DNA of 63,023 nt, counting the filler, from Ginglymostoma cirratum (Eukaryota), in NCBI GenBank assembly GCA_024137785.1. It is 4 parts of 4 records of this genome, joined end to end, with 100 filler letters (N's around TTAATTAATTAA, not from the genome) between each part and the next. Parts side by side here need not be neighbours in the genome. Positions count along the whole stretch, not along the records: positions 1 to 28,793 come from JAHRHZ010000084.1; 3 more parts are not named here. One strand, given 5' to 3'. The number at the start of each line of letters is the position of its first letter. Position 1 is the stretch's first letter. Shown one piece after another: positions 1-40,149 of the stretch. The notes under the pieces were generated by a model. That model did no database searches. It worked only from the letters and a program-made list of their open reading frames with translations, and was not told the DNA's origin. Both the position numbers and the translations under genes were made by a program.

Positions 1-2189
1 GACATCCCGTGACCTTTTTGAGTCATTTTTAAAGTGTGATAGTGAAAAGTGCCACTGTCCATAGATTTTGCTTTTTTTGGCGAGGTATTTGACAACATGA
101 CGTGATGTAAATTTGGTGATATAACTTTGAATGCGGACTATAAATTTCGTAGCTGATCCATTTCATTCTCATGGCATGAGTTATCGGCGATGGAACAGTT
201 ATATTTTGCATTTAGTAGACATCACTTCATTTCACCGCATCCATGGACTACCTGCATCGAGATTTCTGCATGGTTTCTAATGACACATGCAGATGTGCAG
301 GTCGAAGAATTGTTAGGGGTCAAATTGAAAAAGATTTTAGTTTGATTCAGATGTGATCTCAACTCGATTTACATTTGGGAGGTTGCATAATGTTTACTTT
401 GGCAGTGTAATCGAAATAACTAGGGCTAATGGCAGGGATGGACCTGGTATGTTGGGGTATAAACTTAGCATGAGTAACAGAGCAGAGAAACTGGAGTCAT
501 TTCCTTCAGAAAACTAAACGCCTGCAATCACTCATATGAGACTGTAACAAAATCTAAAATACTGGTTGACGAACAGGGTCAAATCAATACAACAAAATGT
601 CTTTAATTACCCTGTTACTAGCAAGTTCCCAACTTGATACTGCAACCCAGTCCTGGCCACTTGATGAGAAAAATCTTAAGAATGCTTATCGGTTTCGACA
701 CGTTAAAAAAAACCTCCATAGTTATTGTGATTTCAGCATTTAAAATGGGTAAATGTCAGGAGGTATTAATTACACAATTAAGGGGCCAGACTGTGTACAT
801 GAAATTTTTATTTATTATTCCATTCCTTTCATTAAAGTCAATCGACCTTTTTGTGTATACTTGTGGTTAATTTTTGCGCCACATCAGAGTAGTCGGCCTG
901 TGTGCCAAGGCCAACCGAGCTCCTAAAACGAGGTGGGCTCTACCTGCTTTGTGTGTTGGTCACTGTTATCAAAACGATCTAATTTCTCAGCTGTTTCTTT
1001 TAGTTTTGTCTAATTACTTTTCTGTAATTTTCACAAAGCTATTTAATTAAATTTAATAGACACAATGATACTTAGATATACGACACACAAATACACAACA
1101 AACCTGTAGCAATATGCTCACATATATACTCTGAACTTGATTAACATTTGAAAATTATTCAGAATTGATAGTCACGTTAAATTTTATCATCTGTGACAGT
1201 TTGTCAGGCTAAACTTTATCCCGAATAGTGAATCACTATGGAGCGTGCGTTGTACCCTCCATGAGAGAGGATGTCCAACTATTAGCCAGGCTTTTTATTG
1301 TGAATTTGCTTAATTATTTGGAACAATCTTCTCTGCAGGATGCAAGCATGCAACTTATTCTGCACCTTCCAGGCAACGGCAACTGTCACTTTCCTGACAC
1401 GTTGGTCCCTGCATGTGCAGTGGGCGGGTTAATAGTTTGATTGTGCCTTGTTGCAATTCTTGTCAAGCGACGGATATCAGGCAAAACTGCAGGCAAGTCC
1501 TGATAGAACTCTGTTTAGTTGTTTTGTTTGGTCTACTCATTGTGGAATGTTGTAACAGGGACTGTGTAAAATTCAGACTCAGGTCTAGATATTCAGAGCA
1601 ATGCAGATATCATTCAAAATGCTTGGCTTTCCTTGGTCTCAGTGCTCAAAAGCGGGCAATGCTTGACGAGGAACCCTTCAGAATAATATGTCCATATCTC
1701 GATATTAATGTGAACCAAGGCTTTGATCTCTCGAATAAATGCTAATGATAATGTAAATGGCCTATATTAAATACCCTTAATGCTGAAACAGGGAAGAGGT
1801 TCAACCGTGAATGAGAAGGTGTGAAATGTGCACTGCAAAAGGATATATTGGACTTTGGACCAAATCTAATCCATAAGTAGAACCTGATGTTATTTTCTCT
1901 TGGTGTCGAAATTGGTCACTTTAAGCCAATATTGGGGAGCTCTTCATGCGTCAAGGTCATGATAAGTTTTATTGTTGATATGAGTTTTATTCTTCAATAA
2001 GAACAGAGATTACTGAAGACATACCAGACCAGTCGGAGCCACAGGTTAGTTCATTCTCATCCAATCAGAAATTAAAATATGCTGTACATTGGCACCATAA
2101 TTATAGGAATTGCACTGAGTTAACAGAACTGTTTTCGTTTATGGCAGAACAATCCGTGAGTATGGCTGAGTTAACGTTTCTTTTACTTC

Positions 2190-2320
2190 GCTGTGGCGCA
2201 GTGGTTTAGCACTGCTGCCTCACAGCGGCAGGGATCCGCGTGCGATTGAAGCGTCGGGCGACTGTCTTTGTGGAGTTCGCACATTTTCCCTGTGTCTGCG
2301 GAGGTTTTTTAGGGTGCTCA
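2190..2320 (+). mobile_element. HE1-type SINE 5' fragment
   Basis: gtggcgcagtggtttagcactgctgcctcacagc..gtggagttcgcacattttccc. Confidence 0.7.
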
Positions 2321-4599
2321 GAATGTCGCCGAGTTACCGTTTCTTTCACTTCGTTATCTTCCTCCCCATTGCGAGTGAAATCAGTACCTGATAACTGCAG
2401 CAGCAGAACTCGCTTTCAGGTAATCAATCAATTCTCACAGACTTCAATGCTTGTTCTGGTGTTTTCATAGAGCCAGCTGGACAACTATTCAAATATGTGA
2501 AAGATCCCATTTCAGACCAGTTCTGTTTCAAATGACATTCTCATCCACAATCTTGTACATAGGCTCTCTCTGCGTTGATCTGGACTGACCTCGGGGCAGG
2601 ATAACCAGCTGTGCCCTTTTCTCTGCCAAGAGCCACTGAGACCAACTGCTTTTTTCTGAAATTTCAGAAGTTCTAACTTGGATGGCTGTGAATTTCTGAT
2701 CAGCGACATGAGATCATTTTTTAAAAATTTGGCAATGAATTAACCTGAACAAGCAGTGGCAAAGAATGGGCACGCAACTGTGGAAATTGGATCCGCTGAT
2801 CTGCTTATATGAGTATTCTCACATACATAATACCACTTACCTCTACTACATTGTAGTCACAAACTACACTGCTCTATTTCTCTGCCCTTGTCAGGATCGA
2901 CTGTATTGATTCTTGTGTTACTGCATGATGTCTTCAGCATGTGATATGCAAATAATATCTGCCCAAATATATCTCATCAGATCAGGAAGAGGAGAGAAGT
3001 GAACGGCCCTTTCGATGCTGCTCTCAATTTCAGTGAGCACAAGAAATCTGCAAAACCCAGGCATGTGGAAGAGCTCATCATCTCTGCCAAGGTATGAGTT
3101 TGACAAAAAGGAGTGCTCAAGTACAATCGTCTAATTTCAATGATGTACATTGACAAAAATTGAACAATTTACTTGAGCAAAAAATGCAAGTGATCTTTCA
3201 TTGTTGCTCCCTCAGACTAAACAAAGCGCCAACAGTAAACTGACATATGCATCTATGCAATTCACCAATTCCCGGAAAAATGAGAAAAACAACAATCAGA
3301 AAGTGGAAATGGCATATGCAGCGATCAAGATAAACAAGACAAGTGGAGAATCCGAGCTCATATAAACAACTAAAGTGACCAACAATGGGCCAGTCACACA
3401 GGTCCACCATGCAGTGTCTGATTATGGATACTACCCGTCCATTGTTGGTTATTTATAATCACATTGACAAATAATGGAATGGAAGGAACTTGCAAAAGAT
3501 TTACTGAGAGAACAACAGTAGGAACTGACACAACAGCTCATCTAGAAATCTACAGCTCCTTTAAAGGAAACAAGGCAGTGCAGTATTCATCAAAGTTTAA
3601 AAGTGGGACCATTGAAATGCGAAATGCATTTGTCTAATTGGTTGGGAGTAGATGAGGCTGATTATTTGGGTCAGTTCTGCAACATTATAAAATTTTATTC
3701 AGTAAAAGGAGTACATTTCTGTTCAATCATCTTGACTCCTCTGACAGCATTTAGGTTTGACAAGAAATTATTCTCACAATTCTTCAAATTATCATATCAG
3801 TATATCCGTATGTTCCTTTCTGTTTCAAGCACTTAGACAGCTCCTCCTACAACGCACGAATCATCATCATCTCAATGCGTTCTTGTAGATGTAAATTGAG
3901 CTATTAAGTATTTCCTGGGTAATCGGAAGAAAATTACGACAAGAATAAGGACAATGTATTAGAGTGACCTTAACTGAAATTTCTTGCTTGCATCACACTA
4001 TACCCCACTTCATGCCCACACCTTGTCGCCCATAAAACTCTTGTCCATCAAACATCTGCCGAACAATTCTGAATAAATTCTGAAAATATTCAATGGTCAA
4101 ACGACATCTGGCTGATGGGAAAGAAAGTGTTAAAGTCCAGTCACCAGCTGGAAAAGTAATTTTTTTCCTGATTTAAGTATGACATAGGTGAGTTCTTTAT
4201 TGTAAATCCTCCACGCCCCAGTTTTAAACTTAAGCATATGTGGAGATATCTTTCTGGTTTTTAGCCTGTCAAATCTGCTTAGCTGTTTCAAGATGATCTA
4301 CTTCCATTGTTGATAACTCCAATGACATTGGTCCAATCTGTATAAGCCTTTCTGATTCGGCCAGAAATCACATGACACCAGGATGTCGTCCAAGAGATTT
4401 ATTCATCTGATGAAGGGATTATGCTTCGAAAGCATGTGTTTTCAAATAAACCTGTTAGACTCTCACCTGCGTGTCATCTGATTTCTGTCCTTGTCCACGC
4501 CAGTCCAACACCAGCACCTCCACGCCTTGCTGATTAGACAGCCCCTTCATTCCATATGTCCCATTTTAAGTGAGCATACAAACTGTACAATCTGCAATG

Positions 4600-6150: not shown

Positions 6151-9100
6151 TCGTGTCTGGATTACTACTGGTGACAAGTGCAAGTGCGAGTAGGAATAGG
6201 AGGATTGAGCAGATAAATGTGTGGCCGAGGAGCTGGTGCAGGGGAGAAAGATTCACATTGTCAGATCATTGGAATCTCTTCTGCGATAGAAGTGACCTGT
6301 ACAAGGACCTGTTAAACCTGAATTGGAAGTGAATCTTCCAATATGTACTGAAGGGGGATTTGCTAGAGCAACGCGGGAGGATTTAAATTAGTTAGCAGGA
6401 GGGTGTGTAGGACTTAGAGATAAAGTGAGAAAAGAGATCAGTTTGAGCCTGGTATAGTTGGGAAAATTAACCAGTCAAACAGTCAAGGCAGTCAGGAACA
6501 AAGTAGAGAATGAAATAGGACTGATGAATTAAATTGCATTTATTTCAATGCAAGAGGCCTGACAGGTAAGGCAGATGAAATCAGGGCATAGTTGGGCATA
6601 AGAGGCATGGAAATCATAACTATTACAGAGACGTGGCTCAGGATTGGACAGGACTGGCAGCTTAATAATCCAGGGTATAGATGCTTTGGAAGGATAGGAT
6701 ATGGGGGTTGGCGGGGTGGGGGGAAGACAGGAGTGGGAGTGGTGCTTTTGGTTCATGAAGTTATTTGGATGGAACTGAGAAATAAGAAAGGGATGATCAC
6801 ATTGTTGTATTTGCACTGTAGACCTCCTTTCATCTGAGATAAATTGAGAAGCAAAATAGTAAGAAGATCTCAGTTATTTTTATGAATAGTAGAGTGGCTA
6901 TGGTAACGGATTTTAATTTTCCAAACACAGACCAGGACTACCATCATGTTAAGGGCTTGGGTGGAAAGTGACCCCAAGAAAACTTTCTTATTCAGTATGT
7001 GAATATACCTACCAGAGAAAGAGCAAAATGAGACTTTCTCTTGGGAAATAAATAAAAGCAAGTGACTGAGGTTTCAGTGGGGGAGCACTTTGGGACCAGT
7101 GATCATAATTCTATTAGTTTGAAATCAGTGATGGAAAAGGATAGACCTGATTCTAAACTTCAAGTTCTAGGTTGGAGGAAGGCCAATTTTGACGGTATTA
7201 GGCAAGAACTTTCAAAAGTTGATTGTGTTGGATATTTGCTGGTAAAGGAACAACTGGAAAATGGGAAGCGTTCAAAAATGAAATAATCAGAGCCCAGAGA
7301 CAGTATGTTTCAGTTTGGGTGAAGGGTAAGGCTGGTAGACGGAGGGAAGACTGGAGAAATTGAGATTCTCGTCAAGAAAAAGAACGAAGCATATGTCATG
7401 TATAGACAGCAGTGATTGGGTGAATCCCTAAAGGATTTTAGAGGCAGTAAGAGCATACTTAATAGGGAAATCAAGAGGGCTAAAAGGGGACATTTACATC
7501 TGCAAGTAGAGTCAATGAAAATCTGAAGGGATTCTACAAACACATTAAGCTGCAAAAGAGTAACTGGGAAGAGAATAGGGCCCCTTAAAGATCAGCAAGG
7601 CCGCTTTTGAGTGGAATCGCAGGAAATGGGTGAGATATTGAATGAGTATCTCACATCAGTGCTTATGGCAGAGCAGGATATGGAATTTAGAGAATTTAGG
7701 GAAAAAAATAGCGATATCTTGAAAAGTGTCCATATTGCAAAGCAGGATGTCTTAAAATGCATAAAGGTGGAGAAATTCCCAGGACTTGATCAGGTGTACC
7801 TGAGAACTTCATGGGAAGCGAGGGAAGAAATTGTTCGGCCCCTTGCTGAGCGATTCGTATCATTGATAGCTACAGGTGAGGTGCTGGAAGACTGGAGTTT
7901 GGACAAAATGGTGCCATTATTTAACATAGGTGGTAAGGTAAAGCCAGGGAACTATAGACTGGTGGGCCTGACATCAGTGTTTATTGCTGTTTATTGTATA
8001 AATTGTTGGAAGGGATTCTGAGGGATAGGAATTACATGTATTTGGAAAGACAAGGACTGATTAAGATTGCCAAGTTGGCTTTGTGCATGGGAAATGGGGT
8101 CTCACTAAATTGATTGAGATTTTGAAGAAGTGATGAAGAGCATTGATGAAGGCAGAGTGGTGAATGTGGTCTATGTGGACTTCAAGAAGGCGTATGACAA
8201 GTTTCCACACAGTAGGCTAGTTAACAAGGTTAGATCACGTGGAATAGAGAGAGAACCAGCCATTGGATACATCAGTTGCTCAATGGTGAGAGACAGAAGA
8301 TGGTGGTAGAGGGTTTATTTTCGGACTGCAGAGCTATGACCAGCACTGTGCCACAAGGATCAGTGTTAGGTCCACTGCTTTTTCTCATTTATATAAATAA
8401 GTTGGATATGAATATCGGAGGAAAGGTTAGTAATTTTACAGGTGACACCAAAATTGGTGATGTAGTGGACAGTTTAGAAAGTTATTTCAGGGTACAACAG
8501 GACCTTGATCAAGTGGGCTGATGGGCTGAGGAGCGGGAGATGGGGAATGCTGCTGAACAAAGAGACTTTGGAGTTCAGGTTCATAGATCCTTGGAAATGG
8601 AATTGCACGTGGACAGGATAGTGAAGGAGGTGTTTGGTACTCTGTCCTTTTTTGGTCAGTGCATTGAAGATAGGAGATGAAAGGTCATGTTGCAGCGGTT
8701 CAGGACATTGGTTAGGCCATCTCCGGAATTTTTTTTTTATTATTCATTCACGGGACAAGGGCTTTGCTGGCTGAGCAGCATATATTGCTCAGAGGGCAGT
8801 TAAGAATCAAATACATTTCCGTGGGTCTGGAATCCCATGTAGGTCAGACCAGGTAAGGATGGCCGTTTCCTTCCCTGAAGGACATTAGTGAACCAGATGG
8901 GTTTTTCCAACAATCGACAATGGATTCACAGTTATTATTAGACTCTGGATTCCAGATATTTATTGAATTCGAATCCCACCATCTCCCATGACAGGATTCA
9001 AACCCACATCCCCAGAATGTTATTGGGATCTCTGGATTAACAGTCCAGTGATAATACCACTAGGTTATCACCTCCCTACGAATGCCACATTCAATTCTGG

Positions 9101-14035: not shown

Positions 14036-14478
14036 CTCCTGGTCATTTGTGTACCGGGTAAAAAGGAAGATGGTTATGTTATTTGGAGGTTAGTCATTTC
14101 AAATTCAGGATATCACTGCAAGAGTTCCTCAGGTTGTGTCCTCGGCCCAAGCATCTTCAATGACTTCATCAATACCTCTCCATCATAGGGTCAGAAGTGG
14201 AGATGTTCGCTGATGATTACATCAATGTTCAAAACCATTTGCAACTTCTCAGATACTGAAGCAGTCCCTACTGAAATGTAGCAAGACCTGTACAAAATCC
14301 AGGTTTTGGTTGACAAACAGAAACTAATATTTATTACATTAAAAATTCCATTATTCCAAATAATGAAGCTAACCAATGACAGAGAATATAGACATTGCCC
14401 CTTGATATCGAATGACACCACAATCATTGAATCTCCGAGCACTTACAGGAAACTGAATGGAACTAGTCACAAATAACA

Positions 14479-16044
14479 GAGATGATAGGTTCTGCAGATG
14501 CTAGAGAATCCGAGGTAACAAGGTGTGGAGCTGGATGAACACAGCAGGCCAAGCAGCATTATAGGGGCAGGAAAGCTTGATGTTTCAGGCCTAGACCATT
14601 CATCAGAAATGGGGGCGGGGAAGAGGGTTCTGAAATAAATTGGGAGAGAGTGGGAGGCGGATAGAAGATGGATAGAGGAGAGGATAAGTGGAGAGGAGAC
14701 AGACAAGTCAAAGAGGCGGGGATGGAGCCAGTAAGGATTAGTGTCGATGGGGAGGTAGGGAGGATGTAGGTCAGTCCAGGGATGACGGACAGGTCAAGGG
14801 GGGGGCGGTATGAGGTTAGTAGATAGGAGATGGGGGTGGGGCTTGAGGTGGGAGGAGGGGATAGGTGAGAGGAAAAACAGGTTAGGGAGGTGGAGATGAG
14901 CTGGGCTGATTTGGGGATGCGGTTGGGGGAGGGGATATTTTGAAGCTTGTGAAATCCACATTGATACCATTGGGCTGCAGGGTTCCCAGGCTGAATATGA
15001 TTTGCTGTTCCTGCAGCCTTCGGGTGGCGTCATTGTCGCACTGCAGGAGGCCCAGGATGGACATGTCATCTGAGGAATGGGAGGGGGAGTTGAAATGGTT
15101 CGCGACTGGGAGGTGCAATTTTTTGTTGCGAACTGAGCGCAGGTGTTCTGCAAAGCGGTCCCCAAGACTCTGCTTGGTTTCCCCGATGTAGAGGAGGGTA
15201 CATCGGATGCAGTATACCACATTTGCAGATGTGCAGGTGAACATCTGCTTGATGTGGAAAGTCTTCTTGGGGCCTGGGATTGGAGTGAGGGAGGAGGTGT
15301 GGGGGCATGTGTAGCACTTCCTGCAGTTGCAGGGAAAAGTGCCAGGTGTGGTGTGGCTGGAGGGGAGTGTGGAGCGGACAAGGGAGTCATGGAGAGGGTG
15401 GTCCCTCCGGAAAGCAGACAAGGGTGGGGAGGGAAAAATGTCTTTGGTGGTGGTGTAGGATTGCAGATGGCTGAAGTGTCCGAGGATGATGCGTTGGATC
15501 CGGAGGTTGGTGGGGTGGTATGTGAGGACGAGGGGGATTCTTTTTTGGTTGTTATTGCGGGGACGGGGTGTGAGGGATGAAATGCGGGAACTGCGGGAGA
15601 CACGGTCGAGAGCGTTCTCGACCACTTCGGGTGGAGGGGAAGTTGCGGTCCTTGAAGAATGAGGACATCTGAGATGTATGGGAGTGGAATTCCTCATCCC
15701 GGGATCAGATGCGGCGGAGGTGAAGGAATTGGGAATAAGGTATGGCATTTTTGCAGGACGGTGGGTGGGAGGAGGTGTATTCTAGGTAGCTGTGGGAGTC
15801 GGTGGGCTTGAAATGGATATCGGTTTCTAGGTGGTTACCCGAGATGGAGACAGAGAGGTCCAGGAAGGAGAGAGAGGTGTTAGAGATAGTCCAGGTGAAC
15901 TTAAGGTCGGGGTGGAAGGTGTTGGTGAAGGGGATGAACTGTTCGAGCTCCTCGTGGGAGCATGAGGCGGCGCCGATACAGTCATCAATGTAACAGAGGA
16001 AGAGATGGGTTTTCGGGCCAGTGTCGGTCCGGAAGAGGGATTGT
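14479..16044 (-). mobile_element. Penelope-like retroelement, 5'-truncated (RT C-terminus plus GIY-YIG endonuclease)
   Basis: ORF 14882-15748 has C-x2-C-x2-C and NVVYCIRC..LYIGET..LGDRFAEH..LGTLQPNGIN; upstream RT remnant YIDDCIG..LDLSV. Confidence 0.92.
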
Positions 16045-19000
16045 CATGTGTAACCACTGGCAATCTGTTGTAAATGATTTAATATATTACTCAAAATCGC
16101 AGAGTGAAATCTCTCCTCATACTTTCAGAGTTGATCTTAGTTACATTGAAAACTCAATTTTCAAATTCATGTCGATCTTTTTCAACCTTCATCGAAGTGT
16201 CAATCGTACTGTGGACAATAACGTATGCCCGAGTGGTTTCTCAACACAGTGCTCTAGAAAACTACTCTGAACACGTTCTAAGGTAAATCCCAAAGTATTT
16301 ATCCTCATTACATATCCCCAGTCTCGTTAGGCATTCTACTTGCTAGATGCTCACATATTTCCTGATTTTTGGCATGCACAATATTACCACTACTCTCACA
16401 ACACCTTTAGATCATTCCTGCATAAATGCTGTCCATTATTGTTCCTAAGGCCGACTCTCATCAGATTTAAAACCATGCTTTTCAAATTGGAGATGTCTTT
16501 CCCAAATGCATTGATTCTATCCCCTTTAGTGGAATCACCCAACTCCCTTTCCTTTTTGCATACTCGGCAGAAATTCCAAGAAGTGTACATAGCTGATTAC
16601 ATGAGTTAAACTACACAGTCAGCATCACCATTCTAATTTAGGAAAGTGTAAATCTCAAGTGCTTTTCTTTAAAAAGTTCAAATGTGCATAATTGGCTTTC
16701 ATATATTATCTTCTGAACTGCTTTGTCCTTGATTATGGTGTCAATTTGTCTCTGCATAAAGTTAAGTGGTTTGATCCATAATTACTAGTTATTATTACAC
16801 CACATATTTCATTCAAACAGAATAATTATATTCTTGTATTCCACTGACCACTGCAAAATCTGAGCTTCAGTTGAGGGACAGACATGAAACTCAGCAGCAG
16901 CCTTCGAATAGCTGTGTGTAAAGGCAAAGTAATGTCATCCTGCATGGTGAATCCAATGATTATTGTGCTTTCCTCCCTCTCACTTCTTGCAGTTATTCCA
17001 ACAATTCATTGTGGTAGCAGCCTGTTGCTTCCAAACTGTCTGTTGTTCGAAATAATAAAATGACAAATTAGGAACAGTGATAGTCCACTCTGGAATGCTG
17101 GCATTATTCTTTGAAGTAAATCATCTATGACTCAACTTCAATATAATGCATTGATCTAAGACTTGATTTCATCAATTAACTTAAAATTTGCGGTATATTG
17201 GTGGAAAAGTCCTTTTTTTTTTGTTTCCCAGCCTCTGTGTTAATTATGTTTCATTCCTCAATGACATTGTCTCTAAATGCACACCAGAAATTTGGCCTAT
17301 TATAACCTGTCATGATTTATATATTGTCAAAACATGGTCAAATAATCAATTAGACTTAAAAGCCCGGTGGACTGCACACCAGACTGATGTAACGTATCCT
17401 TTTAATGCAAACCTGATGTGTTCATGATTCTGCGGTGTCCATCTATAAGGCCAATAAACTGCACCAAAAGTTCGACAACACTTCACACTTGGACTGCAAA
17501 CTGTCGTGATTGTTACCATGTCAGCCGGGTTTACCTCATAGAATATGAGTTCCGTGATTGGGGCTGTTAATCTGGTCCAATCAGTGTGTCCTGTCTGAGA
17601 AATAAAAACAGGAATGTCAGAGGCCCTGTTCACTCTGAGAGCTGGCTCTGAGGGAGCTGGGCCAGTGTCAAGGACTCTCCACGTGTAACTAAAGGGTGCC
17701 TTGCCGAGGGGATACCGGCCTCAGTTGAGTTTTCTCAGTGGCGACAAGATAAAAGCATACCCCTGAAGAAACTTGCTTGCAACACTCTCCGACTGAAGCC
17801 ACCATTGAAGCACAACATTTTGCAAGGTGAGAGCTACAGCAGGAAGAATGTTGTCACTTATTGAGATTGTAATCATAAATTTAAAATATTCAACATGTCA
17901 TTTCATGCCGTAATCTCCTCTGGGCCCACTTTCAATGACTCTGTGTGCAGGTTGTGGGAGATGCCGGTCTCTTTGCTGTCAAAAAATATAGATTGATAAA
18001 AGTAATTGAACAATTCTGCAGTCTTTACTTTCATTTACACAATTGCCCTTCACAGCTGTGAAGGAAGGTACATTGCTCCTGACCATCTGACATTTCCTAA
18101 TATGGCTGTGAAACTTGTTTAAGTGTTTTTGATATCAGTGGTAATTTTCTTCACATAATCTCTTCCACAAGCGTGTCTTCAACACATTTCTGATTTATCT
18201 GTCGGTCCTTATTTTTTATTGCTATGCTGTCCCACAGTAGGCTACATTTAGCTTTCAACATTGTTGATTTGCTCTTTGCTTGTCTCAGACTGTGTTTCCA
18301 GTTTGTAAATAGACTTCGCGCTACTTCCGGGAAAACAAAGGCTCTGTGTTTCGTTGCAAACTTTGATCTTTCATGCTTCTTACTGAACGCATCGGCTTTC
18401 ACCAGATAATAGATTTGTCACTTTTGCTGCAAAGTGTTCTCGTGGTTTCTCAGTGCAGCTAGCTGCATCTACACCCAGAGCCTCAGCTGCTGTTTAGACA
18501 TTTTTTTCCTTCGATACATGACATTGAAATGATCTATATTATAAACCCTGACGAATAAAACTGAAATTAACTTTCTCGTGTTACCTGAATGTAGGTAATT
18601 ATTCATGATTCGGTGTAACAGAATACAACTGTGTTAATTCAACAACCTGTTGCGACAGGACGGTCAGCTGGAATCAGCAGGGGAATGAAATGGAGAACTT
18701 TGATGGAGGAATGTACAGGAAAGTCGGTAGAAAGAGAGAGGAGGGCCGTCAGTAGCCCAGAGAGTTTGAAGGACATGAAGTTCGAAAGCACAAAGTGTCT
18801 GAAATAAACATTGACGGAGCAACGAACCGAAAAGTAAATTGAGGGGAATGAGGTTGTGTGGGAACAGAAAACTGTGAGAGAACAATGATCGAAATCAAGT
18901 TGGAAAAGCATCACAGAAGTTTTGTTCAGCCAGAGGTAGCAAGAAATATATTTACAAACAGGTTGCACAGATTTTTTTTTAATGCTGGAGGATATAGAGA

Positions 19001-19748
19001 TTGCAGGAGTTCAAGGAAAGCTCTATCTTTTTAATTGTGTCACGTCTGTGCTTCAAGGCTTCTGTTTAGTTTAAAGACAGAAAGAGAAATTGCTGGAAAA
19101 GCTCAGCAGGTCTGGCAGCATCTGTTGAGCGAAGTGAGAGTTAACGTTTCGGGTTGAGTCACCTTTCCTCACAACCGAATTCTGCTTCCAGACCTTCTGA
19201 GCTTTTCCAGCAATTTCTGTTTTGGTCTTTGATTTACATTATTCACAGTTCTTTCGATTTTTATTCTTTTTTTTTCACCGCCTGTTTAAGCAGGTAGAGA
19301 AGGCCTTGGCTTGAACAGGGATTGATTCTTGCATCGGGTTGCAGAATGACATTTCACATATTAATGAAAAGAGATGCATGTCATTTGTGACAGAAACGTG
19401 TGTATAACTAACTTGGAAGCAGATTCTGAGTTCAGCAATTACTCAGCTAACTTAGGTTGTCAGCAACCAGCTCGATATGGGATACAACAGAAAGTGTTCA
19501 CAAAACCCAGCAAGTCGGGCAGAATCTGTGGACACAGAATCAGAATTAATGTTTCCCGTCTGAGACCTAACACGCATGTGCCACAGACATATAGAAATGG
19601 AAGAATGAGCTGTCAAATAATCCGAAAGAACGGGGGAGATAGCTATGCACTGAGATAAACGACACATACAGAAAACAAACAGAACATACATACACGCGAC
19701 GTGTACAGACAGACGCAATTAAATCAAGCACAAAACTACACACATAAA

Positions 19749-21311
19749 AGGGTACGTGGAACAATCCCTCTTCCGGAACTACACTGGCTCTAAAACCCAC
19801 CTGTTCCACCGTTACATTGATGACTGCATCGGCGCCGCCTCGTGCTCCCACGAGGAGCTCGAACAGTTCATCCACTTCACCAACACCTTCCACCCCAACC
19901 TGAAGTTCACCTGGACCATCTCCAAAACTTCTCTCTCCTTCCTGGACCTCTCTGTCTCCATCTCGGGTAACCACCTAGAAACCGATGTCCATTTCAAGCC
20001 CACTGACTCCCACAGCTACCTGGAATACACCTCCTCCCACCCACCTTCCTGCAAAAATGCGATCCCCTATTCCCAATTCCTTCGCCTCCGCCACATCTGC
20101 TCCCAGGATGAGGCATTCCAATCCCGTACATCTCAGATATCCTCATTCTTCAAGGACCGCAACTTGCCCCCCCCCCCCCCCCCCCCGCCACAGTGGTCGA
20201 GAACGCCCTCGACCGTGTCTCCCGGATTTCCTGTAACACATGCCTCACGCCACGTCCCCGCAATAATAACCAAAAAAGAATCCCCCTCGTATTCACATAC
20301 CACCCCACCAACCTCCGGATCCAATGAATTATCCTCCGACACTTCCGCCATCTGCAATCAGACCCCACCACCAAAGACATTTTTCACTCCCCACCCTTAT
20401 CTGCCTTCTGGAGGGACCACTCCCTCCGCGATTCCCTTGTCCGCTCTACACTCCCCTCCAGCCCCACAACACCCGGTACCTTTCCCTGCAACTGCAGGAA
20501 GTGCTACACCTGCCCCCACACGTCCTCCCTCACCCCATTCCCGGTACCCAAGAAGACTTTCCACATCAGCCAGATGTTCACCTGCACATCTGCCAATGTG
20601 GTATACTGCATCCGCTGTACGCGTTGTGGCTTCCTCTACATCGCAGAAACCAAGCGGAGGCTTGGGGACCGCTTTGCAGAACACCTGCTCTCAGTTCGCA
20701 AGAAACAACTGCACCTCCCAGTCGCGAACCATTTCAACTCCCCCACCCCTTCCTTAGACCACATGTCCATCCTGGGCCTCCTGCAATGCCACAGTGATGC
20801 CACCCGAAGGCTGCAGGAACAGCAAATCATATTCAGCCTGGGAACCCTGCAGCCCAATGGTATCAATGTGGATTTCACAAGCTTCAAAATCTCCCCTCCC
20901 CCAACCGCATCCCAAAACCAGCCCAGCTCATCTCCACCTCCCTCACCTGTTTTTCCTCTCTCCTATCCCCTCCTCCCACCTCAAGCCCCACCCCCATCTC
21001 CTATCTACTAACCTCATCCCGCCCCCTTGACCTGTCCGTCCTCCCTGGACTGACCGATCTCCTCCCTACCCCCCCACCTACACTCACCTTTACTGGCTCT
21101 ATCCCCGCCTCTTCGACTTGTCTGCCTCCTCTCCAACTATCCTCTTTTCTACCCATCCTCTATCCGCCTCCCACCCTCTCCCTATTTATTTCAGAACCCT
21201 CTTCCCCTCCCCCATTTCTGATGAAGGGTCTCGGCCCGAAACATCAAGCTTTCCTGCTCCGATGATGCTGCTTGGCCTGCCGTGTTCATCCAGCCCCACA
21301 CCTTGTTATCA
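19749..21311 (+). mobile_element. Penelope-like retroelement, 5'-truncated (RT plus GIY-YIG)
   Basis: HRYIDDCIGAAS..HPNLKFT..FLDLSVS and VVYCIRCTRCGFLYIAETKRRLGDRFAEH; frameshift in the poly-C run at about 20167-20186. Confidence 0.93.
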
Positions 21312-23895
21312 CACATAAAAGCATGTTGTGGAGGAAGCACATAAAACGTACACAAACAGGCGGCATTTTAATCAGTGCAAACATGAAGTATGAGCTTGGA
21401 ATTTCACCGAAATAACAGCTTTTGTAAATCCGGAACGCCATCACCTCAACACAATCAGGACGATCACTCAACTAACGGCAGCACCGTAACCCATTCAGCG
21501 CTCACGAAGCAGGATCATCATAAGCGAGTCACAAACAGTGAAATCATCTAAATCACCAGAAAGCTGTGACCCAGCCTCCAGCAGCATCATCGCATCTTCC
21601 CGAGCAGGATCATCATATAACTAGTAGCGGCTTCAGTTTGTTGCTCACGGGATCATCCTGTTATCATCCGCATTATCTCTTCATAATAAACAGACAACTT
21701 TTTTTTGTAGCGGTGCCTGGGTTTGTGAAACACAGAGATGAAGGATTAACCAGTCACTGCCAGCCACATTAATATGTCACCAGCCTTACCCAGTCAGAAG
21801 CTGAAAACTATCAGCGACAGCCGAGATTGATGTAAACTGCTCACAGCGATGGAAGTTTCAAAAATTGGGGAACACCGCTTTTCTGGCGAACAGAATAAAA
21901 TTGAACAGTGACACGGTGAGCAGTATGTTTTACACAGCGATTGTTCAGGGTGGAGAATGAGCTATTTCACGTCTGCTGGGAAAACAGAATCGAGACCTTC
22001 CAAATAGAAAGGGTTCGTTGTCTGTAGATAAAACCACGCAGCATCAGAAATGGAACTCATTATTGCAAAGTGCTGTGGAGGCCAAGTCATTGAGTGCATT
22101 TTAAACAGAGATAGATAGGTTCATTTTTGGTGAAGAGATTGCGGGATACGTGGAGAAGGCGGGAGAATTGTGTCGAGAAACACATCAGCCATGATCGAAC
22201 AGCAGAGCTGTCTCGATGGAACGAATGGCCTAATTCTACTCCAATGTCTTATGGTCTTTCGTGGAAAAGGAACCCAGAGAGTCACTCCTGCGGAGACTCA
22301 GAATGGTGATAGTGCTTCCATGTGAGCTGTAATAAATGCATCATTATTTAATGATTATATGTTACAATCAGCAACAACCAGCTTCGGGTGGTAACACACA
22401 AGCATCAGCGCTGGCGCCCAGTCATTAACATCAGCTTCACCCAGTCTTCAGCACTGGCACCGTCCAGTCACAAGTAGCATTATTAATTCAGTAGAAGCGA
22501 GACAATCAATAAAACACCAGAGTTCAGTTTACAGCGAAAAGCATCACGTTTGAAGAAGCAGGCAGCAATGAATAGATTTACATATTCTTCATCACTGAAG
22601 CTTGAGGTTTGCCTCCCACGCACCAACAGCACATTGTACATTCACACCGAAACTTCAATTACACTAATTATCACCCAGTCGCGATCACGAATAGCAATCC
22701 CTCAGCCACATTTTTCTACTGCCAGGAGCATCAACGACCGATCAGCAGAAAGTCTGAAATACTACAGACAGCAGCCATTCTCCAGTAAAATAAAGCCTGT
22801 AATCATGAAGAGCATTTAGCTTCCAACAGAAACACAAGGACACCGGCAGTATCCAGCATTAACTGGAATAATATCACTCAGTGCTCAGCACCAAAATGAT
22901 TCAGCAGCATCAGACCCCAGCAGATAAAAAACAGTCACCGAGTATAATTATCTAGTCTCCACCTGCATCACTTAGTCATTGGAGAAAATTCCAATCACCA
23001 ACGTTACAAACATCAGCAACAGCAAAGCCCAATTAGGAACAACATCAAGCCACTCGCCAACAACATCGTCCAGTCGCTAAAAACTAAATTCCTTCATGAG
23101 TAAGACCATTTATCTGTCAGAAACATCAACAATGCTTAGTTACTGGAAATTACATCACCCGCTCATGGGCAGCATCTCCCAGTCACCTGCAAAGCTACCC
23201 AATGTGCAGTTACATTGTGTTGTCACGAACAATGTGACCCTGTCACCTTCCCTCATCCACTGGACATTGACGATTGTTTATTCCCTCAAGCTGTTTTCTG
23301 GTGACTGTTCTTTGAGAAACCTATTGCCTAATTTGGATTGAGGCTTAATTCTGTTTTTTTTTATCAGTCTGACTGGTATCCTAATCGATTGTGAATTTGA
23401 AAAGAAGTGATTTGTTACATGACAGACAAATTATTCCAGACTCGTATGTAATGACATTGATGTAACTTTTCAAAGTAATACGATAAGAACAACATGTTCT
23501 TATGTTCTCACACAGTTGTGTTTCCGTTTTATTGTCGCAGTTCTCTCATGCTATACATTGCGGGCAAACACGACACCGCTCTCACCACATCTGCACGAAA
23601 AGTGCCAGTAAGAAGAGAATCAAGTTTGCAGTTAATCAGTTCGGAAATTATCACGTAATGCAAAAATGTTCCATAATCTCTTGAAGAGCAGCAATATGTG
23701 AGATATATTTAACTCCCACGCTGAGTTCATATATCTGATGTAAAAGTAAAAACATCAGTTTGTCGAGGGTGTGGCTTCATTCACTTTGTCAAACATTCTG
23801 TCACAACCTGCTCATTGCCACATTACCTCTACGTCGTCCTGTGCACTTCTCAATAATATGTACTAATTTACAGTGAATTGATCGAGTTTGCTGAA

Positions 23896-23947
23896 ATGGG
23901 ATTGTTGAATGTTCTGTGGTCGATCTCAATCCTCGGCATTTACACAG
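23896..23947 (+). CDS. Non-rearranging VJ-type IgSF gene 1, leader exon
   Basis: ATG at 23896 encodes hydrophobic MGLLNVLWSISILGIYT, then a phase-1 GT donor at 23948 and a 181-nt intron to the V exon. Confidence 0.85.
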
Positions 23948-24128
23948 GTATATATACTTACAGAGGTCGAATAAATATTAAAAGGCATTGGAATTGTGTA
24001 CACATTACTTCTGTTCAATGCTTGTGCTTTTTTTTCACAATTTTTTTAATCGTTATATTGTTTTACACATTGTTCTCTCACTAACAGTCTTGCGAATCAT
24101 TGTCTGTTCATGCGCTTGTTTCTCACAG

Positions 24129-24449
24129 TAGCTGATGGGAGCTTTCTCCGAATGCTTCAGTTCCCCACCCGTTTGACTGCGGTGAAAGGGACAAATGTGT
24201 CCATGAATTGCACTTACACACTTTTCGATCCCAAAGCAATCCTGGATATTTCCTGGTCGAAACGAAACCAGAACAGGACAGTAGAAGTGACAGCAGACAA
24301 CAGGAAAGTAATGATATCTTTGAAACAAGCAGCTGCCGAGTTACATCGGCTGAATGTGGATTTTCAGGACAGCGGAGTATATTACTGCAGCGCGAGAGAC
24401 TGGAAACATAAAATTTCTTCGAGGAATGGGTCTGAGCTTATTGTGCACG
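24129..24449 (+). CDS. Non-rearranging VJ-type IgSF gene 1, single-exon V domain including G strand
   Basis: Acceptor ttctcacag| and donor CACG|GTGAGT; 321 nt, phase 1-1, open. (V)ADGSFLRMLQFPTRLTAVKGTNVSMNC..ISW..DSGVYYCSARDWKHKISSRNGSELIVH shows canonical Cys/Trp/DxGxYxC and a J-like NGSELIV. No RSS. Confidence 0.92.
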
Positions 24450-26199
24450 GTGAGTGATGTAAAGGGCTCAGGTAGGATTATGCAGGTGTATTTGGAGAAT
24501 GTATTGCTTCTGTGTTTCGAGCTGTGCTTCTCATTTTCTACGCTTTGCAGCAATCGCTGTCTTTTCGCACAGGCGCATTGTTGAAAGCCTGCAGAAATCA
24601 GTAAATAAGGCTTTAGACAATCATTAATATCATTTCAGTGTAAGGAACCGAAAGAACTGCGGATGTTGGAAATCAGAAACAAAAGCAGAAAACTCAGCAG
24701 GTCTGGCAACATCTGTGGGGAGGAATAAGAGTTAATGCTTCGGATCTAGTTCTGTTTCTGTTTACCATTTAAATGTATTTCAGTTATCTCTATTACTGTT
24801 CTGACATTGAGTCACTAGTTTAGATAGCGTTCATTGTTAATCCGATTTATCTTTGAATCAGTGGCAGAGGGACATATTCTTGAATCGCCGTTGAGCATGG
24901 TTAATGCGATAAGAACGTGCTGTAATTGACAAATGAAAAAGTTGTTTCTTCAGCGATAATGAAGATTTTTTTTATGTCCAGCGAGAATTCTCAATGTTTT
25001 GAGTAACGATATTTGTCTTTAGCTTCTTTCTGTATAGTAACCCCCTCAACAAGAGACTCAGCTCTTGTTCCAGATTCTCTGGAATGCTGAATCAATTGCT
25101 CATATTTAACCAGTCAAGTCCTTCCTGAATATTATATTTTTCAATGAGATCAGCTCTGATCGCTCCAACCTCCAAACAACATCGATGAAAAATACTCATC
25201 CCCTAAATACAGGACAATCCCGTAACAGCGGCGACAAATAATGTTAATCTTCGTTGCTCTTCCTCCAATTCAAATACAAACTCTCTCAAATATGGAGACC
25301 AAACTACAGATGGCATTGTCAGAGTGGTTTAACCAAAGCACTGTGAAATTGCCGAAAGACTTATTTCTAACTTTGTCGTTCCTGCCTCCTTGCATTGAAA
25401 AAAATTTCAGTTTTCCTTTTTAATTGCCTGTCCCTCCTGCATTCTGACCTTCCAAGCTTCTTGCAGGATAGCACACAAAATGCCACTGAGCATCAAGGCA
25501 AAGAGTTTTGCACATTTCAAAAATATTCTGTTGAACTATTCATTTCCCAAAGTGCACAACATCATACTGTATAATTAATATGCAAGCCTCTTCGCCATGT
25601 ACCTCGCCTTCCTATGCATCTTACTCACAGCTTTATTTTGTTATTTTGTTTGTTTATTTTTTGGATGTGGTCATCTATGGATATGTCAACATTTGTTGCC
25701 CACATTTATTTTTAATTTAACTGATTAACTCATGCAGCAGTTAATGGGCCATCTTATTGCTGACAGGAACGGCTCATATTCTGGCTCGGTTGGATAAATT
25801 AGGCAGAATTCTTCCTGAAGGTAAACATTTGAGCCAGAAGGATTTTGACAACAGTTGATTATGGTTGGCATTGTCACAGTAATTGAGATTTGAATATTTT
25901 AAATATTGAAATAATAATCATTGAAGAATTCAATCAAATTTAGTAATAAGGTAAATTTGCGCCAGTGCGAGGATTTGGATTCATGTTCACAGGGCATTAA
26001 TGTGTGACTCTGGATTACTGAGAAGGATAAGTGGTATGATCAGATGATACATTATTGCATGGTGTTGGGGGGCGGCGATTCATTCGCACACATGGTGGAT
26101 TCATTCGGGATAACAAATCAGAGTAAATTGATAATTGGTGGACTAGTGAATTGCAGCTAGTGTCACAGATGAGTGCCGATACTCAAATACTTCGAAATT

Positions 26200-27285
26200 G
26201 AAAAAATACATGACTGGAGAGGTGTGCGAGGGGAAGGGGTTCAGATTCCCAGGGCATTGGGAACAAACCTGGGAGAGTTGGGACCAGTATGAACTGCACA
26301 GGTTTAACTGGGCAGGTATTGAACTGATGTCCGAAGGGATGTATTGGTTCGTGCGGTTGGAGCTTTTAAACTAAAATGGCTGGGCCTTCGAGGTACCCAG
26401 GGAGGTAGAAGAGATGAAACCACGGGGGCAATAAACCAGACAAAGTGCGGAGTAAGAATGTGTTAGGCACAGAATTCAAGTATAATAATCAATCAGGGCC
26501 ACATTGCAAAAATAATGTGAACAGATCAAATTCTTAAAGAGTCAAGCCTTAAGGACTTATTTCTTAATGGTCATAGATTCACAATAAAGTGGATAAATGA
26601 GTAATGCAACTTGATATAAAATGCATACTATATAGTTGGGATGACAAGACTTGGTTCAAATTGATGATGAATGGGAATTGAACGTCCAGAGTGTTCAGTT
26701 TTTATGAAGACAGATCGATAGGTAAACGAGGTTCTGTAACATTGCTGGTTAAGGAGGGCAGTAACACAATAGTGAGGTAGGATATTAGCTCACATAAAAT
26801 AGAATCTGTCTGGATAGAAATTAGAAAGACCAAGAGGCATAAAATGAGAGTCGAGTATGTTCAAAGATCACCAATCTGCTGGCATAATATTAGGGAAAAC
26901 ATTTAACAGGAAATTAGAAATGCAAGAAATAGAAGGGCAGCCGTAATTAAGGTGGCATTAATCTGCATCTCAGTTGAGTAAGTCAAATCAATAACAATAT
27001 CACAGAGGCAAAATTCCTGGAGTGTGTATGGCATGGTTTTCTGGATCAATGCATTGCAGAACCATTGACAAAACAGGCCATCCTCAACTGGGTAATGATA
27101 AAGGGATAATTGGTAATTTGGCTGTGCAAGATCTTCTGGGGAAGAGTGACCATGGTATGACAAAATTGCTAATTAAGTCATACAGTGACATTGTTGACTC
27201 TGAGACTAGAATCCTGAAATTTAATAAAGGAAAATGTGCAGCATATGATGGCTATGATGAATTAGGGAGTGTTACTTAAAGAGAT
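26200..27285 (+). mobile_element. Decayed CR1 LINE (ORF1 end and endonuclease)
   Basis: LGKSDHGM motif; similar to 6150-7260. Confidence 0.65.
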
Positions 27286-27317
27286 GATTGTGTAAAAGTG
27301 AAGAGAAAATGTAAAAA

Positions 27318-27814
27318 GTGGCTTTAAGAGGTGTGTTTTATCCTTGTTTCTTCCACAGAGAGAGAAGTGTGGGGAACAGGTGACGAGCAGTCTTTGAGAA
27401 GATAAACAATTTGTGGAGTCTTTGGTGCTCTTTTTCTAAACAAAAAAGCTGGAACCAGAGAAGCAGCCTGCATGGGTTTGGTCAAGTTCCCACCCACAAA
27501 ACCAGGGATTTTTAGTTCTTAATTTTCAGCAGAAATTGCTGTTCAAGTCTTGAACAAGTGGCAGCAATTTTGCCCTGTCTCGATGTCAGACTCAAGCCGA
27601 CAGATCTGAAAACTAAAAACTAAAAATCCCTGGTTCTTTGGGTGAAAACTTGACCAAACTCATTCAGCCTGCTTCTCTTGTTCCATATTTTTTTTAAAAA
27701 AAAAAAGGCACCCAAGGCTTCACAAGTTGTTTATCTTTTTATTGACTGTGGCACCTGTCTCCCAAAAGTCTCTCTTTCAAAGAACCGAGTATAAAGCACA
27801 CTTCTTAAAGCCAC
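27318..27814. repeat. Imperfect inverted repeat (arms about 200 bp, spacer about 90 bp)
   Basis: gtggctttaagagg...accagggatttttagtt mirrored by aactaaaaatccctggtt...cttcttaaagccac. Confidence 0.75.
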
Positions 27815-28793
27815 AGCATTGTCGTAAAAGTAACAGGAAACTGGCTTATGGGAGGATGGCAACAGAAATTGCTGGAAAAACTCAATAGGTCTGGCAGCAT
27901 CTGGGAGGCAAAGCAGAATTAAAGTTTTGGATTCAGTGATCCTTCTGAAGAATGGTCTGAAGAAGTGCCACTGGAGCTGAAACATTAATTCTGCTCTGTC
28001 TCCACATATGCGGCCAGACCGGCTGACATTTGCCAGAAATTTCTGTTTTTGTTTCTGATTTCCAGGGTCTGCAGTTCTTTGATTATTGATTACAGGATAG
28101 GTCTGGGTCATACTGTTTTTAGATACCAGCTGTTAACGAACAGTCGCAAATGAACAAAACCAGTTACCAGCATTGATCTGCCAGTGCATTGCAACACTGG
28201 AGAATTTGGACATCACAGAAAGGCAGAGGACAGACTTATTCAGCCTAGGACTGAGAAGTAATTTTGATACTCTTAATCTGTTTGATGCATTCTATAGACC
28301 ACAAACCAGGAGGAACAAAATCAGAGAACAAATTGAAAGCATAAATTATAAAGAACTGCAAGAATTATGAGTTAGTTGTAAAGAGGCTCTTTACATTTCC
28401 AAGCACAGACCAGTATAATAACAATGCTAAATGCAAGAGTTTGTGGAGAGTTTCAATACCAGTATATTTTCAGACCAGTAAGGAAAGAGTCGCTGCTCGA
28501 TCCAGTGCTGAGAAATAATTTGGTTCAATGGGATGTACGTCTACAGGGAGATAATTCGGACAAATATCTGTGCTATTTCAAGGTTTACATTGGCTCTGGG
28601 AATGTAAAAAACAAATTAAGAGTAAAAGTAGTTTCTTTTTAATTGATTTGTGGGATGTTGAGTGTTGCTGGCTGGCCAACATTTATTGCCCATCCCGAGT
28701 TGCTGTTGAGAAGGTTGGAGTTGGAGAACAGCCAAATGCTATAGGAACCTAATGGGTCTGAGCAAGATAATTGGCATTGCACATGGCCAGGCA

Positions 28794-28893
28794 NNNNNNN
28801 NNNNNNNNNNNNNNNNNNNNNNNNNNNNNNNNNNNNNTTAATTAATTAANNNNNNNNNNNNNNNNNNNNNNNNNNNNNNNNNNNNNNNNNNNN
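28794..28893. other. Artificial contig spacer
   Basis: N44-TTAATTAATTAA-N44 (stops in all six frames). Confidence 0.97.
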
Positions 28894-39828: not shown

Positions 39829-40149
39829 CTGTTGTTAACACTCATTTCCAAGTCTTCCAGGCTCCTGAAAGCGCGAACGCCCCAGTAGGTTCAAACGTTA
39901 CGTTCTATTGCACATTTCCCATTTTTCAAGATAACTCCGACGTAGAGGTCTTTTGGTGGAAACTTGGCGAAAATACATTTCTGCACAGAACCTCAAACAG
40001 CAGGAACGTATTTCACTTTTTTAAACAAGGTGGCGGCTCCTTTCATCTCCTGAACATCAGTGCACGGGATTCCGGGGTGTACGTCTGTGGAGTGAAAACC
40101 CTGGGAAACAGCATTGTAAATGGAACTGGCTCAACGATGAACGTTTTCG
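39829..40149 (+). CDS. Non-rearranging VJ-C1 gene 2, single-exon V domain including G strand (missed by the ORF track)
   Basis: Acceptor tttttctttacag| and donor TTCG|GTAAGT; 321 nt, open. (A)VVNTHFQVFQAPESANAPVGSNVTFYCTFPIFQDNSDVEVFWWKLGENTFLHRTSNSRNVFHFFKQGGGSFHLLNISARDSGVYVCGVKTLGNSIVNGTGSTMNVF. No RSS. Confidence 0.92.

Follow-up and report, generated by a model that had tools for sequence, protein, structure and literature searches.

Mammalian NKp30 (NCR3) has an arginine in its membrane anchor and is not known to possess a C1 domain, SIRP-alpha has two C1 domains, and the teleost NITRs carry a second domain that differs from that of the receptor family described below. In sharks, an NCR3 family is reportedly defined in Kinlein et al. 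2021. According to one source (PMC11599192), NKp30, SIRP and NITR are grouped with CD79, CD8 and PRARP as 'joined VJ' types, the J consensus is FGxGTx(L/V)xV, and the CD28 family is marked by a proline motif in the CDR3-like loop, either MYPPPY-like or PPP before GxG. As for UrIg2, another source (PMC12227049) describes nine C1 domains and a TM/cytoplasmic domain.

Here, we describe a locus in a stretch of 63,023 nucleotides from the nurse shark Ginglymostoma cirratum (further referred to as the window), which is joined from four parts; the locus lies in the first of these, positions 1-28793 (JAHRHZ010000084.1). In our judgement, the exon at 24129-24449 together with its leader is probably the 5' end of a transcribed, non-rearranging gene of a large cartilaginous-fish family of SIRP-like/NKp30-like V-(C1)-TM receptors. 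The gene is one more member of a family known from predictions in many shark and ray species, rather than a novel type of gene.

Exon structure of the gene

The two exons and the signals that flank them were delimited as follows (X1-X4 are sequencing runs and P0001 is a Chiloscyllium plagiosum protein, both treated in later sections):

23774-23895, + strand, 5' untranslated part of exon 1, minimum extent; the spliced X2 contig (record 8) begins at 23774 and X4 record 24 at 23775
23896-23947, + strand, leader exon, coding part; ATG at 23896, then 17 codons MGLLNVLWSISILGIYT plus G (23947) as the first base of a split codon; donor GT at 23948
23948-24128, + strand, intron 1, 181 nt, GT..AG; contig joint 23942>24124 (skip 181, cut +5) in runs X1 and X2
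24129-24449, + strand, VJ-type V-set exon, 321 nt, phase 1-1; by translation, Pfam and 70% identity to P0001
24450-24455, + strand, V exon splice donor GTGAGT, in use; X1 record 3 and X3 record 16 match as far as 24450

The true start of the transcript cannot be fixed from contigs, and the 5' UTR measures at least ~120 nt; a TATA-like ATATAT at 23729-23734 was noted by reading of the sequence alone. The acceptor AG of intron 1 occupies 24127-24128 and is preceded by a pyrimidine-rich tract (72% pyrimidine in the last 29 intron letters examined).

Translation of the V exon (24131-24448) gives 106 codons without a stop. Fourteen residues separate Cys27 from Trp42 and 43 separate Trp42 from Cys86, which sits within D-S-G-V-Y-Y-C, a form of the D-x-G-x-Y-x-C motif. 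There are four sequons, N22-V-S, N26-C-T, N48-R-T and N99-G-S, the last of which falls inside the J-like G strand S-R-N-G-S-E-L-I-V-H. The Pfam V-set profile matches the exon over profile positions 1-105 of 109 with 41 bits (cut-off 26; E 2.4e-10); given this score and the orthologue-level database match reported below (E 2.7e-42), the V exon is not a chance open frame. The preliminary description had claimed an intact leader and V exon, a length of 321 nt in phase 1-1, Cys-14-Trp and Trp-43-Cys spacings, four N-glycosylation sequons (NVS, NCT, NRT, NGS) and a J-like G strand RNGSELIV already within a one-exon V. All of this was confirmed: the ATG at 23896, the canonical splice sites and a frame open through both exons account for the first claim, phase 1 at both ends of 24129-24449 for the second, and the remaining ones were counted or read on the translated V exon.

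Compared with the J consensus FGxGTx(L/V)xV, the window V keeps the second Gly and L-x-V; Phe is replaced by Ser, the first Gly by Arg, and Thr by Ser, the last of these exchanges preserving a sequon. The V domain and the J-like strand are contained in one exon with the motif R-N-G-S, the corresponding motif of P0001 being G-N-G-T. Of the two Gly positions, only the second is invariant across a 24-row alignment; the first varies, Glu being found there in Scyliorhinus P0006. The CD28/CTLA-4 family was rejected as a candidate, as the CDR3-like loop SARDWKHKISSRNGS contains no proline; the CD28-family slant of the preliminary description is not supported, the proline motif being absent from this loop of the V exon.

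Transcription and splicing

Five sequencing runs of one organism hold part of 23700-24700; none of them is recorded as RNA, and three were guessed to be RNA. Contigs of four runs (X1-X4) were placed on 22900-28793; such contigs show neither strand nor level. We found that intron 1 is removed exactly as predicted, 23947 being joined to 24129 in one contig each of runs X1 and X2, and that this joint is absent from the X3 and X4 contigs placed on the same region, 22900-28793. The V exon is covered without differences by contigs of runs X3 and X4. Two contigs, X1 record 3 and X3 record 16, carry 47 and 28 letters, respectively, beyond 24450, which are placed nowhere in 22900-28793. As these V contigs continue past 24450 into non-local letters, the donor is used and the next exon lies outside 22900-28793. 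Off the exons, depth in runs X1-X3 is limited to short high-depth repeats, a stretch near 27000-27430 and two low-depth X1 bins, a pattern that fits RNA. The contigs of two runs that lack intron 1 indicate that the gene is transcribed and spliced. A lack of expression, which the preliminary description had named as an outcome that would speak against it, did not come true: intron 1 is spliced out in X1 and X2 contigs, and contigs of X1 and X3 show use of the V donor.

In run X4, a contig of 641 letters and depth 26 (record 25) matches 24131-24449 with its positions 323-641, while its first 322 letters match nothing in 22900-28793; the match thus begins two letters inside the V exon. The leader contig of the same run has a depth of 4.9 as opposed to 26 for the V-exon contig, and the form with its own leader may not be the main transcript in this run.

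Of the 260 V-exon letters in the spliced contig of run X1, 11 deviate from the window (24248-24353), whereas the 68 leader letters of this contig are identical. The differences amount to seven amino-acid changes and four silent ones; one of them, Arg73 to Leu, yields the residue which P0001 has at this position. A second X1 contig (24294-24383) is identical to the window. The divergent V exon stems either from another allele or from a second copy of very recent origin.

Genomic surroundings

A six-frame regular-expression scan of the 1-28793 part detected a D.G.Y.C Ig-like frame only at this V exon. When 12 family proteins were compared with the same part by tblastn, only the leader and the V exon were recovered downstream of 23000, and no C1, TM or tail exon was found between 24450 and 28793, where nothing scored better than E 0.77. 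The earlier statement that no C1 exon precedes position 28794 agrees with this search. The exon at 39829-40149, of which the preliminary description made this V exon a diverged paralogue, belongs to another, unrelated part of the window. If the gene is built like its relatives, its C1, TM and tail exons must lie beyond 28793.

Upstream, at 1336-3362 (+), we identified a membrane-anchor exon and three cytoplasmic tail exons that belong to a further member of this receptor family. An in-frame TGA interrupts the anchor exon of this upstream member, and one ITIM position of its tail reads F-D-A-A-L, with a tyrosine in relatives; its last exon keeps LTYASM and MAYAAI ahead of the stop. The V exons of this member must lie before the start of the window. 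Much of the 20 kb between its tail exons and the leader consists of retroelement remains, among which are two inverted copies of one element with long overlapping open frames at 14400-16050 (-) and 19720-21320 (+). Pfam searches with six retroelement frames gave only sub-threshold matches to GIY-YIG and RVT_1. The GIY-YIG match (E 8e-4, sub-threshold) falls in one frame of the inverted element and would fit a Penelope-like element. A separate reverse-transcriptase fragment is located at 8234-8518 (RVT_1, E 5e-5, below the cut-off).

Downstream of the V exon, short repeats at 24650-24720, 27861-27903 and 28038-28080 reach summed contig depths of thousands in each of the runs X1-X4. False joints are frequent among these repeats, e.g., 24676>27861; the repeats are dispersed fragments, and the joints do not represent splicing. 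In each of the four runs, contigs of low depth cover the stretch 26992-27430, one of them being a 322-letter X1 contig on 26992-27297. These contigs overlap a 94-codon open frame (26995-27276, +) without Ig features, and the stretch is probably a transcribed repeat rather than the next exon of the V gene.

Likely orthologue and family members

The leader and V exons were used as separate queries, exon by exon. For the V exon, the word-indexed search was run with the natural open frame 24050-24454, of which residues 28-134 were scored, against proteins of 74-236 aa. The sole match among nine candidates was P0001 of Chiloscyllium plagiosum, a protein of 125 aa with 70% identity over the V domain (E 2.7e-42), named by NCBI 'natural cytotoxicity triggering receptor 3-like, partial' and consisting of leader and V only. 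Twelve of the 17 leader residues are identical between P0001 and the window gene, and the leader-to-V junction is the same; P0001 differs in that it keeps G-N-G-T, has one extra residue in the C'-D region and is itself a partial model. P0001 is likely the orthologue of the window gene.

An exhaustive search of 1.84 billion representatives returned 149 proteins at E<=1e-3, 29 at E<=1e-10 and two at E<=1e-30. The best single-V matches come from Heterodontus, Cetorhinus, Scyliorhinus, Mobula and Chiloscyllium and are elasmobranch V-(C1)-TM-tail proteins (P0002, P0003, P0005, P0006, P0008, P0009 and P0010), in which the V domain is followed, directly or via a C1-set domain, by a membrane anchor and a long tyrosine-rich tail. 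A search with a seven-sequence profile among proteins of 145-462 aa gave 28 proteins at E<=1e-5 from 6067 candidates, and 45 at E<=5. The first 22 matches are elasmobranch family members; behind them rank, in this order, Callorhinchus proteins, one protein each of Hemitrygon and Stegostoma, and NITRs of the zebrafish group (E 8.8e-8). A C1-set Pfam match was obtained for 18 of the 22 elasmobranch members, and the four without C1 are all labelled 'isoform X2' or 'isoform X4'. In a crude scan for a 21-residue segment free of charges with one or more ITIM consensus motifs behind it, 16 of the 22 scored positive; for two members the scan put the anchor in the wrong place, and for four it recognised none.

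The names given to the family by NCBI are inconsistent and include tapasin-related, SIRP-alpha-like, NCR3 ligand 1-like (NCR3LG1-like), CD276 homolog, H-2 class I-like and Ig lambda-like. Two public models open with parts of the preceding gene, the tail exons in P0138 and the C1 domain in P0064, and continue with the V of the next gene; such models reflect either read-through transcripts or fusions introduced by annotation within tandem clusters. No Ginglymostoma protein was found in three word-indexed searches (74-236 aa; 145-462 aa, 45 matches at E<=5), and the window gene is apparently undeposited. In the open papers searched we found no description of the elasmobranch V-(C1)-TM-ITIM family, which is not proof of its being unpublished.

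Phylogeny of the V domains

V domains were cut with the family profile, and a maximum-likelihood tree of 75 rows and 106 columns was built under LG+C20+F+G4 with ultrafast bootstrap and SH-aLRT supports; the columns are few for this number of rows, and long branches meet. The tree omits unnamed rows below 95 bits, matches covering fewer than ~85 profile positions, and duplicate segments. The outgroups comprised frog NCR3-like, shark multi-V, NITR and Polypterus sequences and one VSIG1-like sequence; mammalian NKp30, SIRP, CD79, CD8 and Ig/TCR as well as the deposited nurse-shark NCR3 were not among the rows.

The window V and P0001 form a sister pair (100/99) inside a clade of 18 shark and ray rows (100/100), which in turn lies inside a set of 58 rows (96/97) whose named rows are all cartilaginous fishes. 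Outside this set we find the frog NCR3 P0099, Pelobates P0085, the Heterodontus three-V protein P0073, the NITRs and the Polypterus protein; P0099 and P0073 constitute a supported clade of their own away from the window V. The tree shows, for the sequences sampled, that the window V belongs to an elasmobranch family that is not nested among the NCR3-labelled domains included, without singling out the nearest classical family. The preliminary description had supposed an old, diversified family, and both the 149 matches at E<=1e-3 and the 18-row clade (100/100) within the 58-row set bear this out.

Similarity to solved structures

Among solved chains, the best full-length single-domain matches of the V exon are TCR alpha (E 0.004), PD-1 (0.012) and CD79b (0.014), a result which does not discriminate. 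Multi-domain Ig proteins (titin, DCC, contactin, pIgR) prevail in the lists obtained with the V exon and with the 24-row family profile. With either query, human NKp30 is missing from the best 60 solved chains, and SIRP is missing from the best 60 with the V exon. When the full-length member P0002 is the query, SIRP-alpha (PDB 2WNG) ranks first among solved chains (E 5.2e-14), ahead of titin, the shark UrIg2 V-C1-C2-C3 structure and the IgA1 heavy chain, after which come many Ig light chains aligned over V and C. A bridge through Pelobates P0085, an NKp30-style two-V protein, did not bring up NKp30, and the ESM Atlas, queried with P0001, returned generic V-set clusters only. UrIg and UrIg2 themselves were rejected as candidates, since UrIg2, with the nine C1 domains described in PMC12227049, is unlike the relatives of the window V.

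Alternative explanations

A V domain with a J-like end in a single exon, together with weak full-length TCR alpha matches (E 0.004), could point to a germline-joined V-J gene of a rearranging antigen-receptor locus of the Ig light chain or TCR type, one sense in which 'pre-joined' in the preliminary description can be read. However, neither a CACAGTG/CACTGTG heptamer nor a nonamer is present in 23800-24800, and the only heptamer-like string at the end of the V exon, CACGGTG, is the splice donor itself, at which the exon ends and which is in use. Every close relative is a V-(C1)-TM receptor that does not rearrange and has a signalling tail, antigen-receptor names are absent from the word-indexed matches, the proteins called 'Immunoglobulin lambda-1 light chain-like' (P0027, P0178) fall outside the 18-row clade, and the other family sequence in the 1-28793 part comprises receptor tail exons only. 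Missing recombination signals and the architecture of the relatives make a germline-joined copy of a rearranging gene very unlikely; we give this origin practically no credence, and 'pre-joined' in that sense is not supported. It is also improbable, though with some arguments in its favour, that we are dealing with a true NKp30 (NCR3) family gene, i.e., one of the eight published nurse-shark NCR3 subtypes or their sister, encoding an NKp30-type receptor for B7H6-like ligands. P0099, P0085 and the Heterodontus multi-V protein are placed outside the 58-row set, no Ginglymostoma protein was matched in the word-indexed searches (74-236 and 145-462 aa), human NKp30 is missing from the best 60 solved chains of both the V exon and the family profile, and the anchors recognised in relatives are uncharged and lead into a long tail with tyrosine motifs. 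These findings have to be set against the NCR3-like name of P0001, the NKp30-style GNGT in the G strand of the relatives, the match of frog NCR3 P0099 to the V exon (E 2.7e-5) and the eight nurse-shark NCR3 accessions listed in PMC12227049. NCBI does name the likely orthologue P0001 NCR3-like, but a specific NKp30 affinity, towards which the preliminary description leaned, is not supported: the NCR3-labelled V domains sampled stay outside the clade and NKp30 is not among the best 60 solved chains. If the family of Kinlein et al. 2021 includes V-C1-ITIM genes, the label 'NCR3 family' applies and the finding is even more clearly a known one.

Other explanations accept the family and concern the state of the gene. 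A decaying or orphan exon pair, transcribed and spliced with no working receptor downstream, seems to us a rather poor candidate, for the frame is open in both exons, the splice sites are canonical and used, the V donor is joined to further sequence in two runs, and Cys, Trp, D-x-G-x-Y-x-C and the second Gly have all been kept; what speaks for decay is that tblastn detected no further exon within 4.3 kb, that the first Gly of GxG is lost, that P0001 likewise consists of leader and V only, on a 6.2-kb contig, and that the TM exon of the upstream neighbour has an in-frame stop. There is also a small chance that the main role of the V exon is that of an internal exon within a longer transcript, either as a second V behind an upstream V or through read-through from the upstream neighbour. 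Such a role would account for the 322 non-local letters ahead of V in X4 record 25 (depth 26, leader 4.9), any phase-1 exon would fit ahead of a phase 1-1 exon, and the public models P0138 and P0064 of relatives begin with the tail or C1 of an upstream gene. Yet, this is one contig of one run, de Bruijn contigs may be chimeric, and its match starts two letters inside the exon; moreover, the rows above 80 bits with the family profile are all single-V except P0109, which has a weak 13.6-bit second stretch, and no other V exon is present in 1-28793. Only with considerable hesitation would we suggest that the V exon is shared between transcription units, being joined either to its own leader or to ~320 nt of upstream exons, e.g., V or other exons of the neighbour with the dead anchor exon. 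If it is shared, tandem genes of the family would swap ectodomain exons by read-through splicing, leading to two-V or hybrid receptors.

Predicted receptor and its significance

We thus favour the 5' end of a transcribed, non-rearranging gene of the V-(C1)-TM receptor family. Judging from its relatives, the mature protein would be a glycosylated type I membrane receptor, in which the single V domain would bind a ligand, its G strand being built in so that recombination would be unneeded. The V domain may be followed by an optional C1 domain, depending on whether the C1 exon is included or skipped by splicing, and then by an uncharged membrane anchor and a tail whose ITIM-type tyrosines would recruit SH2 phosphatases and dampen the cell. 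The V-C1-TM-ITIM architecture and inhibitory function that the window gene would have are borrowed from its relatives; as its own anchor lies outside the sequence, the gene might also encode an activating variant.

The gene adds one more transcribed member to the map of a large shark receptor family, in which a single antibody-light-chain-like unit is set on an inhibitory tail, and non-rearranging V domains with a built-in J strand bear on ideas of antigen-receptor origin. By itself the locus changes little, as the start of the gene is cut by the edge of the window part and public pipelines already predict the family in numerous species. The points of note are the upstream partner of the V exon in run X4 and the divergent second form of V in run X1 (seven amino-acid changes in 260 nt).

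Comparison with known receptors

The teleost NITRs are the nearest matches outside cartilaginous fish when the V-plus-tail profile is used (E 8.8e-8 and 2.1e-6, with query cover of 68% and 48%), but they occupy a separate long branch in the V-domain tree. NKp30/NCR3 has in common with the window gene a non-rearranging V and a built-in J-like strand with an N-G-T/S sequon, and is set apart by the C1 domain and the inhibitory-type tails found in the relatives of the window V. Mammalian SIRP-alpha and the family both combine a VJ-type V with C1-set domain(s), an anchor that lacks charges and several ITIM-type tyrosines in the tail; the difference is that the family has one C1 domain.

The closest resemblance is to the cartilaginous-fish SIRP-like V-(C1)-TM-ITIM receptors, predicted proteins such as Heterodontus XP_067905923 and XP_067905925. 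Their V domains are 42-55% identical to the window V over its whole length (P0002, P0003, P0005, P0006, P0008 and P0010), and the leader style, the conserved NVS sequon and the related NGT/NGS sequon on the G strand are common to them and to the window gene. In contrast to these receptors, the window displays the leader and V only, and the first Gly of GxG is replaced by Arg in its V domain.
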